Shown: in pieces, positions 46,643 to 64,000 of the stretch
How the letters are laid out: each line of letters begins with the position of its first letter
How positions within the stretch are numbered: the first letter of the stretch is position 1
Assembly: GCA_019828565.1 (NCBI GenBank)
Contig: JAHDYR010000007.1
Location: 541,233 to 605,232 of the forward strand
Source: Carpediemonas membranifera BICM
Lineage: Eukaryota > Protista > Fornicata
DNA length: 64,000 nucleotides
Reading direction: 5' to 3'
Notes under the pieces: model-generated
Told to the model about the DNA's origin: nothing
Database searches by the model: none
What the model saw: the letters and a program-made list of their open reading frames with translations, nothing else
Position numbers and translations under genes: made by a program

Positions 46643-49600
46643 TGTCATGACGACCTCATTTAATGATCAGTCTTATTTGGTCAATGATCTCAAACCTGCT
46701 TCTAAATTTCACTCTCTCAATTGTTTGGGTACCACAGTAATTACTGCATGCATTTACCTGAAACAAAACTCAACAACGCCCCGTTCCTGCGAAAGGCCAC
46801 CACCAAGTCGTGGTATACTTTCCGTCAAGACTACGAGCAGTATGCTGCCCGTGAAGCCGATCCGATCGTTGCCTTTGACCTAATCGAAACGCAGGTCCTA
46901 GAGGTTCTTAAGATCCGAATCCCTGAACTTGAGGGGTTCCTTGAGTACGCTAATGAAACGCCGGATGAAGAGCCGGCCGATACCTCTGAACTCAACGAGG
47001 CCTTTATCACCATGGTAGACGAGCTGATGCAGCCTCTGGATGAGGTGGACGCTTTAGATCGCTTTAAGGACTTGTCGTGCGGCTCTGAGGGTAACCTCAT
47101 TGACAACATGGCCGCGTATGCCCTGGCGTATAAGCGTCAAGTTCGTAACTGTTGTAAGGTTCGGCCCACGGAGAAGCTCATCGTCGATGCCTTTGTTGCT
47201 GGCATCAGGTACGGTCGCTTGAAGGAGCGAGTGAATGCTAAGAAGGCGAAGACGCTTGACGAGACGATCGCCGAGGCATTCATCCAGGCCACGGAAGCAG
47301 AGAAGGCTCGCAGAGAGCACCAGCGTGTGGAGCGAGAGAGTGCGACCTCCGCAACGATGACTAAGGCTAAGGAGAAGTCGGAAACTGCTTGTGAGTACTG
47401 CCAGCGCAAGGGTCACACTGCTGATACGTGTTGGAAGCGTAAGCGTGACGAGCGTGAGGGAGTAAAGGGGCAGAAGTACGTTCATCTTAATGCTTTGTCG
47501 CGGAGGACCGCGACAACAGACCCATTGGCGAGGTGGGCATCCTGGGGAGAGTGTTGGCGTTCCTTTATGACACAGGGGCCTCTGCCGACTTTATATCCCA
47601 ATCCCTCGTCAAAGAGCTCGGCCTAGTCGTCGAGCCCGACCATGCTAAGGTTAAGCTGGCCACTGGTACGATTTACAACTCACCCGGCATTGTTAAGTTG
47701 AGTGCAGATTTTGGAGTGTTGCCATCTACTGGGCGGAGAACTCAAGCTGCTCTCAATTTGCGGGTGCTACCCGGGCTGAAGCCGACATTAGTTATGGGAA
47801 TATCGACATTAAGTGCGTTGGGGCTAATCACGATCGTCAAGCCGACGATGGAGAATTCTGGAGAGCCACACTTCGCGGAGCTTGATGAAGATGAAGTAGA
47901 CGAGACGTTATTTACCCTTGCTGAAGCGGAGCACGAACTACAGATACGTAGCTTCCCTGAAGAGACTAATACCATCCTAAGCAAGTACAAAGACGTTCTC
48001 GGCGACATTTCGCAGCCAGCAGACGTTCCACCCTTCGAACTGGTTCTTACAAACCAGAAGGTTATCAACATCCCTCCATACCACGTCTCGGCTGAAGAAA
48101 GAGAGGATATGCAGCGCCAGACGGCGCAGCTGGAGGATCTGAATGTGATTGAGGAGTCTACGAGCAACTATAACAATCCTACGGTGCTTGTATGGAAGCG
48201 CGATCGCACCCGCAGGCTCTGCTTGGACTTTCGGCGCCTTAACGACGCGACGGAGGACTTCGATCACGACCTCCCTATCATTGACGATCTGGTAGCAAGA
48301 CTAGAGGGTAAGACCCTCTTCGCTAAGCTGGACCTAAGCAAGGCCTTTCACCAGATTCCTATGACCAAGAGCTCACGCAGACTAACGGCGTTTACAGTTG
48401 GGAAGCGTAAGTACCAGTACAAGCGTTTAGCTTTCGGACTCAAAGGGGCCGCAGCCTTCTGTCAGAAGACCCTCGAATCCGTACTGGGCGATGCACTGTG
48501 GACACGGTGTCTCGCATATGTAGACGACATAGTAATATTCGGAGAGAACCAGAGAGAGTACCTCGACAATCTGGACTATGTCTTGAGAAAGCTCAACTCG
48601 GCCAAGTTGAAGCTGAATCTGTCCAAGTCTGAGTTCGGACTGACAGAAATAGAATACTTGGGCTGGCTTGTGAATGGCGACGGCAAGCGAATCGCGCCTG
48701 ACCGCCTAGAAGGCATCGACCGCCTAACCAGCCCGAGAGATGTTGCCGGAGTCAGAACCTTACTCGGGTTCACGAACTATTTTAGCCATATGATTCCGAA
48801 CTACGGCAATATGATGGAGCCAGTCCTGGCTCTGACGAGAGCCAAGGAAGAGTTCCGTTGGGAGAAGGCCCAACAAGATGCCCTAGTCGACATCAAAGCG
48901 ACCCTATCTCAGAACAACATGTTAAGTCACCCCAAGCGTGGCTGCCAATTAATCCTACAAACCGACGCGAGTGACTACGCTGTCGGGGCAGTTTTGTTAC
49001 AGATCGAAGACGGGGAGGAGCGTCCGATTGCTTTCTATTCCAAGACACTATCGGATGTTCAAAGAAGGTGGAGCACCTATGAAAAGGAAGGCTTCGGCAT
49101 TTATTACGCTATGATCAAGGCCGAGCGGTTCCTAGTAGGCAGGCCGTTTACTGTGAGAACGGACCACCGGAATTTGCTGTATATCGCGACAAGCACGAAC
49201 GCTAAGGTAACTAGATGGCGCATGGCACTGGAAAGGTTCGACTATTCCGTCGTACACGTGCCTGGTCAAGCGAACGGTGCTGCCGACGCGCTATCTCGCC
49301 TATGCGGTGCAACAGTCGAGGCAGATGATCACGCCACGTGGATCTCCGAGGTTCACGGAGGCATACACGGCCATCTCGGAGCGAGAGCGACGGTGAACAA
49401 GCTTATATCGCTCGGTAGGAGGTGGAGGGGCATGTATAAGGACGCAGAGGAGTTTGTCCAGTCGTGTCCTGTGTGCCAGGTCACGCGCAAGACGGCCAAG
49501 CCCGTCCAACACTTGTGCCACCGTACGGCAGGTCGCCTGCCGTTTGATGTCGTGCAGGTAGACACGATCGGACCCATCGCGGAGAGCGAGGGTCTGCGGT

Positions 49601-50913
49601 ACGTGTGCGTGTTAATTGACACGTACTCGAAGCTAACTATGCTGGTCCCCACGCGTTCGACGGACGCAGATGCCGCGGCAGGGGCAATTTTGGCCTGGGT
49701 GGGTCACTACGGAATTCCCCGGGTGATTCACAGCGACGGGGGCAGCCAGTATAGAAATAAGCTGATTGACGCTCTAATGGAAAGGCTCGGGTCGCAACAT
49801 CACGTCGGCACGCCTTACCGCCCGGGTTCTCAAGGAATAGTTGAGAGGGTCAACGCCGAGGTTAAGAGGCATCTAGAGACGCTAATGCTCGATCTGCAGG
49901 AGTTTAGATGGACGCGGCTACTACCTTTGGCTCAGTACATCATTAATTCAACATCTGTGGCCAGGACAGGCCTATCGCCACTGAATTTGCTTTATAACCA
50001 AGACGTGGTCGTAAGACCAGAAGAGATCATGAGCAATGAGAGCAAGATGCCATTTGAGGCCTTCAAGCGCAGCCTGGAACTACAGAGAGTCATCCAAGAC
50101 CAGGCGCTGCAACAACAAACACCATCAGAAGCATCACACGTGGCCCTATCGAACAAGCCAGTGCTGGTAACGACCACTGTCGGCCGCCGCACGAAGCTGG
50201 CTGGGCCAATGTGGTGCCAGGGACCCGCAGAGTCGCCGAACGTTTACTACGTGGAGAACCTGACGACAGGCGTAGTGGCTAAGGTCCATGCCGAGCGTCT
50301 AAGACATTTTGAGTCTGACGCGACAAGGGCTGAGTTGACACGGCTCGCGGCCCAGAGAGTTGACGAATATGTCGTAGAAGCGATCGACTCTCACAAATTT
50401 GAGGACGGCGTCCTTCACCTACATGTGCTGTGGGAGGGGTACCTCGAGGAAGAGGCGACATGGGAACGCTTCAACGCCGACCTTGATGAACTTAGGGCGT
50501 TTGAGGAGTACCTCGCAGACAAACCGAGTTTGCGCAGAAAACTCCGAGGTCAAAGGAAATTAGCTTCCTATAGGCAGCGCTAATAACCAACGGCTCATCA
50601 AAAAGCCATTTTGGGGTTTTGCCCAGTTGGTGACCGCAGCCTAGGGGGGGAAGAGCAGAACGTTGGAATCTAGTTACTGATATTGGTTATTTCTTATGTT
50701 CTACACCATTCTGTCCGCTATTTGTTCGTTTAGAACAGCGTTCTTCAGACTATTGTGCTCAATTGCGTTTTTGACTTCACTGGAGTCGGTCTGGCGGGTT
50801 TTGCATTTCGCCGGACTTGTGTGGTACCCAAACAATTGAGAGAGTGAAATTTAGAAGCAGGTTTGAGATCATTGACCAAATAAGACTGATCATTAAATGA
50901 GGTCGTCATGACA
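46643..50913 (+). mobile_element. Ty3/Gypsy chromodomain element, family 2, unit 1, bounded by 94-bp inverted repeats
   Basis: X = 46643-46736 (TGTCATGACG...GGTACCACA); reverse complement of X at 50820-50913; gag-pol lies between. Confidence 0.93.
46748..50583 (+). CDS. Family 2 gag-pol polyprotein (consensus probably one ORF of ~1280 aa; unit 1 lacks one G near 47496)
   Basis: CCHC knuckle CEYCQRKGHTADTC, protease LYDTGAS, RT YVDD, RNase H TDASD..TDH..ADALSR, integrase HHCC plus DDE, chromodomain EYVVEAIDSH..LWEGYLEEEATWE. Confidence 0.92.
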
Positions 50914-62700: not shown

Positions 62701-64000
62701 ACACGTACTCGAAGCTAACTATGCTGGTCCCCACGCGTTCGACGGACGCAGATGCCGCGGCAGGGGCAATTTTTGGCCTGGGTGGGTCACTGCGGAATTC
62801 CCCGGGTGATTCACAGCGACGGGGGCAGCCAGTATAGAAATAAGCTGATTGACGCTCTAATGGAAAGGCTCAGTCGCAACATCACGTCCGGCACGCCTTA
62901 CCGCCCGGTTCTCAAGGAATAGTTGAGAGGTCAACGCCGAGGTTAAACGAGGCATTCGAGAGACGCTAATGCTCGATCTGCAGGAGTTTAGATGGACGCG
63001 GCTACTACCTTTGGCTCAGTACATCATTAATTCAACATCGTGGCCAGGACAGGCCTATCGCCACTGAATTTGCTTTGATAACCAAAGACGTGGCGTAAGC
63101 CGCAGAAAGAGATCATGAGCAATGAGAGCAGATGCCATTTGAGGCCTTCAAGCGCAGCCTGGAACTACAGAGAGTCATCAGAGACCAGGCGCTGCAGCAA
63201 CAAACACCATCAGAAGCATCACGCGTGGCCCTATCGAACAAGCCGGTGCTGGTAACGACCACTGTCGGCCGCCGCACAGAAGCTGGCTGGGCCAATGTGG
63301 TGCCAGGAGACCCGCAGAGTCGCCGAACGTTTACTACGTGGAGAACCTGACGACAGGCGTAGTGGCTAAAGGTCCATGCCGAGCGTCTAAGACATTTTTG
63401 AGTCCTGACGCGACAAAGGGCTCGAGTTGACACGGCTCGCGGGCCCAGAGAGTTGACGGGATATGTCGTAGAAGCGATCGACTCTCACAAATTTGAGACG
63501 GCGTCCTTCACCTACATGTGCTGTGGGAGGGTACCTCGAGGAAGAGGCGACATGGGGAACGCTGCAACGCCACGTGATGAACTTTCAGGGCGTTTGAGGA
63601 GTACCTCGCAGACAAACCGAGTTTGCGCAGAAAAACTCCGAGGTCAGCGAAATTAGCTTCCTATGAGCGGCGCTACAACCAACGGCTCATCAAAAAGCCA
63701 TTTTGGGGTTTTGCCCAGTTGGTGACCGCAGCCTAGGGGGAAGAGCAGAACGTTGGAATCTGAGTTACTGATATTGGTTATTTCTTATGTTTCTACACTC
63801 ATTTCTGTCCGCTATTTGTTCGTTTAGAACAGCGTTCTTCAGAACTATTGTGCTCAATTGCGTTTTTGACTTCACTGGAGTCGGTCTGGCGGAGTTTTTG
63901 CATTTCGCCGGACTTGTGTAGTGCCAAACAATTGAGAGAGTGAAATTTAGAAACGGGTTTGAGATCATTGACGAAATAAGACTCGATCATTAAATGAGGT
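59715..64000 (+). mobile_element. Family 2, unit 4 (right inverted repeat cut by the window edge)
   Basis: Same architecture; highest indel density. Confidence 0.9.

Follow-up and report, generated by a model that had tools for sequence, protein, structure and literature searches.

Among the closest described relatives of the structure considered here are the inversion circles of long terminal repeat (LTR) retrotransposons, in which an inverted portion lies between two LTRs and which are documented products of autointegration (PMC7197481). For Ty1, flap-associated autointegration has been reported, as cited in PMC7197481. We analyzed a stretch of 64,000 nucleotides from Carpediemonas membranifera BICM (contig JAHDYR010000007.1, here C8; G000:C8:541233-605232), which is called the window below and to whose positions all coordinates refer unless a contig is named. 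From position 46643 to its end at 64000 the window is occupied by a tandem array of a gypsy element in which a 94-bp sequence, X, and its reverse complement, revcomp(X), enclose a gag-pol region in each unit. The original prediction read this arrangement either as a terminal inverted repeat (TIR) element that has retained a reverse transcriptase (RT) and is intermediate between Gypsy and Ginger, or as a shared-LTR array carrying an extra inverted LTR. We propose that the inverted ends reflect a rearrangement of an ordinary gypsy element at a single locus, in which an integrase-made self-insertion was followed by recombination-driven amplification, and we place the probability of this reading at about 85%.

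The layout of the array is as originally described. A repeat search and direct reading both gave units of approximately 4350 bp in the order X, gag/pol, revcomp(X) and spacer, and the left edge of the array falls precisely on the TG of X, beyond which the sequence is unrelated. Unit spacings in the repeat search are approximately 4350, 4357 and 4365 bp. The revcomp(X) copies at 50820, 55175 and 59541 are perfect or 99% reverse complements of X, and the distances from each of them to the next X are 78, 80 and 80 nt, which agrees with the predicted spacer of about 78 bp. The original prediction had also stated that no purine tract precedes the sense copies of X. This holds inside the array, but a tract is nevertheless present in inverted form, as cttcccccc directly after each revcomp(X).

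The form of an ordinary copy of this family can be taken from the rest of the genome. A search with X against the whole assembly gave 44 matches and revealed nine pairs of X in direct orientation, approximately 4251 bp apart and distributed over eight contigs; five ordinary copies were examined in detail. The ordinary element consists of X, an internal region, 78 nt and a second X, with a length of 4345 bp (range 4344-4346), and it corresponds to positions 1-4177 of the array unit joined to positions 4178-4349 in reverse complement. Copies L001, L002, L003 and L006 carry an identical 94-bp X at both ends in direct orientation, and perfect 5-bp target site duplications (TSDs) were found in four ordinary copies (GCACG, GAACG, GGTGC and GGAGT). 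The polypurine tract (PPT) of these copies, GGGGGGAAG, abuts the 3' LTR as GGGGGGAAG/TGTCATG, where the slash marks a junction here and below. Across the whole assembly, 17 loci on ten contigs retain the ordinary junction, in which the internal region runs unbroken into the 78-nt tail, while the full-length junction of internal ACTTG with revcomp(X) is found in the C8 array only.

Compared with the ordinary element, the array has the last 172 bp (ACTTG, 73 nt and the LTR) inverted. The ordinary sequence ...gccggACTTGaaccg...(73 nt)...ggggggaag/X is replaced in the array by ...gccggACTTG/revcomp(X)/cttcccccc...cggttCAAGT/X, in which the inverted LTR is complete to the last base on both sides. 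ACTTG is present twice and in inverted orientation, such that ACTTG...CAAGT flank revcomp(X) and the spacer in every unit. The length of this inverted duplication is that of the TSD of the family (5 bp), and the length of the unit is that of the element plus the duplication (4345 + 5 = 4350 bp). The LTR tips are joined to one internal site, as ACTTG/TGTGGTACC... in the array and as ...CGTCATGACA/ACTTG at the right end of the complex to which the array belongs. Because complete LTR tips occur together with an inverted 5-bp duplication and a unit of exactly one element plus 5 bp, the junction is best read as integrase-made, and the arrangement carries the junctions that are diagnostic of an integrase self-insertion or autointegration product. 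Two other origins were considered and rejected: a plain DNA inversion can account for neither the additional LTR nor the 5-bp duplication, and site-specific inversion by a nearby recombinase fails in that each unit gains a whole extra LTR and the 5-bp duplication beyond what inversion alone would give. The target ACTTG, at element positions 4174-4178, lies between PPT-like tracts at positions 4003-4012 and 4243-4251, and this placement might, by analogy with the flap-associated events of Ty1, favor autointegration there. A second plus-strand priming site with a flap at the upstream GGGGGGGAAG tract is a possibility. The coordinates of these and other features are collected in Table 1.

Table 1. 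Positions of the parts of the C8 array, of the duplication that bounds the complex and of tandem arrays of other gypsy families. Positions are those of the window unless a contig is named.
Feature	Position	Strand	Basis or remark
Left copy of TSD CGGAT bounding the complex	46638..46642	.	Empty-site paralogs
Unit 1, 4349 bp (predicted 4350)	46643..50991	+	Ordinary-copy positions 1-4178, then reverse complement of 4174-4345
X, 94-bp LTR, TGTCA...CCACA; 5' LTR of leftmost unit	46643..46736	+	Repeat search; direct X pairs at other loci
gag-pol of unit 1	46748..50583	+	Split into two frames by a 1-nt deletion at 47497
Upstream polypurine-like tract GGGGGGGAAG, 3' untranslated region	50644..50653	+	Repeats the PPT motif; in ordinary copies the true PPT follows 240 nt downstream
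ACTTG, internal target site, joined directly to inverted-LTR tip (junction 1)	50815..50819	+	Full-length junction unique to array
3' LTR, inverted, = revcomp(X)	50820..50913	-	Repeat search
78-nt spacer, reverse complement of last 78 nt of ordinary internal region	50914..50991	-	Comparison with ordinary copies
Inverted PPT cttcccccc, start of spacer	50914-50922	-	
CAAGT, inverted second copy of ACTTG target, end of spacer	50987-50991	-	
Units 2, 3 and 4; unit 4 cut by window end and gap	50992..64000	+	Alignment to ordinary copy
Further sense X copies	50992-51085, 55349-55442, 59715-59808	+	Repeat search
Further revcomp(X) copies	55175-55268, 59541-59634, noisy one ~63917-64000	-	Repeat search
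Right copy of TSD CGGAT, after last LTR	G000:C8:609513-609517 (L004:4514-4518)		
Plain tandem arrays of other gypsy families	G000:C1:899750-906999 (L012); C19:102930-110897 (L013); C63:876450-882999 (L014)		

The array extends beyond the end of the window and is part of a complex of at least 21.6 kb in the assembly that is bounded by a single CGGAT duplication. At three paralogous empty sites (L009-L011) CGGAT is found once and uninterrupted. Inside the complex, beyond the window end, is a run of exactly 100 N, followed by 93 noisy bases that align weakly to the element and then by an inverted copy of element positions 1-3913 with 99.87% identity. At its right end the complex runs from the inverted copy through revcomp(X)/ACTTG and 73 nt to X/CGGAT, and its left end is CGGAT/X. 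The outer LTR ends are thus ordinary and direct and are bounded by one TSD, and the complex goes back to a single insertion of an ordinary element by integrase. The revcomp(X)/ACTTG junction on the right and the ACTTG/revcomp(X) junction on the left form the pair that is expected for an inverted insertion at ACTTG.

A small number of steps could lead from an ordinary element to this complex. A resident copy would have been seated in CGGAT inside another repeat, and at ACTTG, a site that lies 73 nt upstream of the 3' LTR of this copy, integrase would have attached an element by both of its LTR tips, which attacked the one site in element DNA on opposite strands. Two routes to such a product can be envisaged. 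In the first, a second copy would have inserted in inverted orientation into the resident copy (nested self-insertion), while in the second the same cDNA would have attacked itself to give an autointegration inversion circle, and this circle would later have recombined with the resident copy. By either route the terminal PPT and LTR segment would be turned around, creating the appearance of inverted terminal repeats. Let A stand for the internal region, T for ACTTG and iB for the 73 nt that separate T from the 3' LTR; let sp denote the inverted iB plus T, and let primed letters indicate the reverse complement. Nested inverted insertion would then give X-A-T-X'-sp-A'-X'-T-iB-X. Recombination between the 172-bp inverted repeats (X'-sp and the right-end complement) would flip the inner copy and yield X-A-T-X'-sp-X-A-T-iB-X. 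The array would then grow through unequal exchange between direct repeats of 4.2 kb, and a further flip of the last unit would reproduce the inverted copy on the right. The ordinary structure of the family, the restriction of the inverted junction to one locus, the complete LTR tips, the inverted 5-bp duplication and the single outer TSD are direct observations. The integrase route, the mechanism of amplification, which was probably recombination, and the true copy number are inferred.

The version of these events that begins with a circle deserves separate consideration. Here an autointegration inversion circle would be the origin of the 4350-bp unit. Homologous recombination (HR) with the resident copy would have brought it back into the chromosome, where it was amplified in tandem, a history that we regard as possible but rather doubtful. 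The two integrase routes are indistinguishable by sequence, because recombination of a circle with the resident copy leads to the same X-A-T-X'-sp-X-A-T-iB-X, and a circle origin is likewise not proven, because nested inverted insertion followed by inversion gives an identical sequence.

Several observations weigh against a self-insertion amplified by recombination. The recombination is a proposed reconstruction, and the evidence for the array comes from the assembly: in the only public run found, X1 (Logan contigs, 11 million letters), four short contigs lie inside the element and none over any junction. The center of the complex falls in the 100-N gap, so that the structure is seen only in part, and the count of four units is unreliable, since quality decays toward the gap as it does at a contig end built from few nanopore reads. 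Two single-nucleotide polymorphisms (SNPs), at element positions 1845 and 2875, distinguish parts of the complex: unit 1 has G,T, units 2-4 have A,T and the inverted right copy has G,C. Ordinary copies include both the G,C and the A,T type. These haplotypes fit neither simple two-step scenario exactly and suggest at least two source copies, although polishing in repeats may have altered the sites.

The quality of the assembly also bears on whether the array is real. For the C. membranifera genome, MinION R9.4 reads were assembled with ABruijn v1.0, and Nanopolish and unicycler_polish were used for polishing (PMC8516963). Relative to an ordinary copy, unit 1 has 2 mismatches and 1 gap position (0 of 1 indel events in homopolymers), unit 2 has 1 mismatch and 11 gap positions (10 of 10), unit 3 has 1 mismatch and 14 gap positions (13 of 14), and unit 4 has 25 mismatches and 66 gap positions (20 of 50). 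Because this indel pattern is that of a contig end with few reads, the broken open reading frames (ORFs) of units 2-4 are probably sequencing errors and the number of units cannot be relied upon. The exact length of 100 and the decay of quality on both sides argue for a scaffold gap at the run of N.

It is conceivable, though in our judgment improbable, that the assembly is partly artefactual, that the real locus is only a nested pair of approximately 8.7 kb, with one inverted copy inserted at the ACTTG of a resident copy, and that the tandem units were generated by the assembler cycling in the repeat graph. The gap in the middle of the complex, the indel-rich and decaying sequence of units 2-4 and of the first 93 nt past the gap, which is typical of contig ends, and the use of ABruijn v1.0 on R9.4 nanopore reads are all consistent with this, and the spacer-to-X junction is the reverse complement of the right-end junction and would already be present in a simple nested pair. 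However, such a pair would have an inverted internal region after the spacer rather than X, the junction between units 1 and 2 is 100% clean, and the two true contexts share only 172 bp, which would be far below usual long-read overlap lengths. Because of this clean junction and the short sequence held in common with a nested pair, at least one forward duplication is probably real.

A scheme that dispenses with recombination altogether appears very unlikely. In it, successive copies would each have inserted inverted into the ACTTG of the previous copy, in the manner of an onion. This recursion reproduces both contig ends exactly, with units that face forward on the left and their mirror images on the right, and a separate insertion for each layer would predict the differing SNP haplotypes of unit 1, units 2-4 and the inverted copy. 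Against this, it needs at least seven successive hits on one 5-bp site, always inverted, no other genomic copy shows even one such hit, and recombination yields the same layout with fewer events. The least credible explanation, with next to no probability, is a true TIR-type mobile form bearing an RT and inverted 94-bp ends, whether intermediate between Gypsy and Ginger or DIRS-like, for it is suggested only by the local look of X...revcomp(X) around a complete gag-pol and by an X that starts TGTCA, while every checked copy has a PPT as well as direct 94-bp LTRs and, where both ends were read, a 5-bp TSD, each solitary copy ends in direct X and none in revcomp(X), the inverted junction is unique to the C8 locus, with the ordinary 3' junction kept at 17 others, the C8 complex itself has direct outer ends (X left, X right) with one TSD, and Pfam finds no tyrosine recombinase domain in the element. 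A tempting false lead is thereby removed: the locus holds no TIR element with an RT that would link Gypsy to Ginger. The second option of the original prediction, an LTR array with an extra inverted LTR, came close to the actual structure but erred in regarding it as a shared-LTR array, since the unit is a full element plus 5 bp with its 3'-terminal 172 bp inverted.

The element itself is a canonical, very compact Ty3/gypsy chromovirus that has all of the defining features except a tRNA-type primer site. Intact ordinary copies have one continuous gag-pol ORF of 1279 aa, which starts from an ATG 11 nt past the LTR. This ATG was correctly placed by the original prediction, as was the absence of a TGG-type tRNA primer-binding site after the 5' LTR. 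Unit 1, with the single 1-nt deletion at 47497, is the only near-intact unit of the array. Pfam identified in unit 1 a protease, RT, RNase H, the zinc-binding (Integrase_H2C2) and core (rve) domains of integrase and a chromodomain, in the order protease-RT-RNase H-integrase with the chromodomain at the C-terminus (Chromo, 25.9 bits against a cut-off of 25.1). The gag-pol motifs include a CCHC knuckle, the protease DTG and the RT YVDD, and the closest relative of solved structure in the PDB is Ty3 Gag-Pol (E 5e-71). The family is young and has at least 17 ordinary copies in this genome.

Where a primer-binding site would be expected, a 12-nt perfect palindrome, CAGTAATTACTG, spans the LTR end (46735..46746, + strand) and is followed by an 8-nt palindrome, TGCATGCA; the gag ATG lies within the stretch that they cover (46735-46754). 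Self-priming of the Tf1 type was considered and rejected, as the sequence that follows the LTR showed no complementarity of at least 7 nt to it and yielded nothing beyond local palindromes. Primer-site type varies within the Ty3/gypsy group, with Tf1-type self-priming as an example, and because of this variation the missing TGG site does not exclude membership of the chromoviruses. In run X1, a 450-nt contig over part of gag (46935-47383) has a word depth of 264, as against 2-6 elsewhere in the element.

The flanks of the complex come from a different repeat family, of which the genome contains at least 40 copies. When the flanks are joined they give one open frame of 519 codons that is split by the gypsy complex. 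No Pfam match was found for this interrupted ORF, for its left-flank piece or for the ORF to the right. Sequence of the host repeat lies at 40999-46642 of the window and at G000:C8:609513-615000 (L004:4514-10000), and it contains an RT-bearing ORF on the minus strand at 40999-43260 (RVT_1), G-rich tandem arrays of 14-15 bp at approximately 44200-45700 and a 390-aa ORF at L004:7206-8378. It may be a DIRS-like or other composite element.

Other copies of the C8 family and other gypsy families in this genome are also found in complex arrangements. At G000:C39:885000-887500 (L007) two copies of the C8 family are arranged tail to tail, their 3' LTRs separated by 453 bp. In several further copies the paired LTRs are 8-23 kb apart, a spacing that suggests extensive nesting of other elements. 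An integrase scan revealed three other gypsy families in plain tandem arrays, on contigs C1, C19 and C63, with 100% identical units and periods of 3943, 3942 and 4279 bp. No inverted repeats are present in these three arrays, which look like shared mini-LTR arrays; an 84-nt repeat, for example, occurs three times in the array on C19. Tandem amplification of gypsy elements thus seems to be common in the C. membranifera genome.

An inversion-type junction that is chromosomal and tandemly repeated is uncommon, yet it follows from known mechanisms. At the C8 locus the action of an integrase on its own element has left a clean trace in the genome; products of this kind are usually seen only as extrachromosomal DNA. 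The C. membranifera genome has been proposed to rely heavily on HR (PMC8516963). Arrays of this kind could, speculatively, mark recombination activity in an HR-dependent genome, and if the circle origin were true, an HR-reliant protist would be able to stably inherit circular by-products of retrotransposition. The locus also illustrates how near-identical elements with mini-LTRs give rise to long repeats, both inverted and tandem, at which a nanopore assembly breaks.

The family can finally be placed among the systems that it resembles. With the Ty3/gypsy chromoviruses it shares gag (CCHC), protease, RT, RNase H, integrase and chromodomain in that order, direct TG...CA LTRs, a PPT beside the 3' LTR and a 5-bp TSD; it differs in its very short 94-bp LTRs, its single gag-pol ORF and the 12-nt palindrome at the position of the primer site. 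The Ginger1/2 DNA transposons also have a gypsy-like integrase and termini starting TGT, but they lack an RT and have true TIRs, whereas the C8 family has an RT, direct LTRs and 5-bp TSDs. DIRS-like retroelements share the inverted terminal repeats around an RT that the array displays locally, but use a tyrosine recombinase and produce no TSD, while the C8 family has a DDE integrase and 5-bp TSDs. In shared-LTR tandem arrays, as in the C8 complex, a whole element is repeated head-to-tail inside one insertion site. The period at C8, however, is the element plus 5 bp (4350) and not the element minus one LTR (4251), and each junction has two LTRs in inverted orientation around a 78-nt spacer. A circle of Moloney murine leukemia virus with an inverted segment has reportedly been cloned. 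The autointegration inversion circles of Ty1 and of Arabidopsis SISYPHUS (PMC7197481) share with the C8 unit a full element in which the segment from the target site to the LTR is inverted, complete LTR tips and an inverted target duplication of the TSD length of the family. The known circles are extrachromosomal dead ends, whereas the C8 form is chromosomal, tandemly repeated and enclosed within an ordinary TSD.

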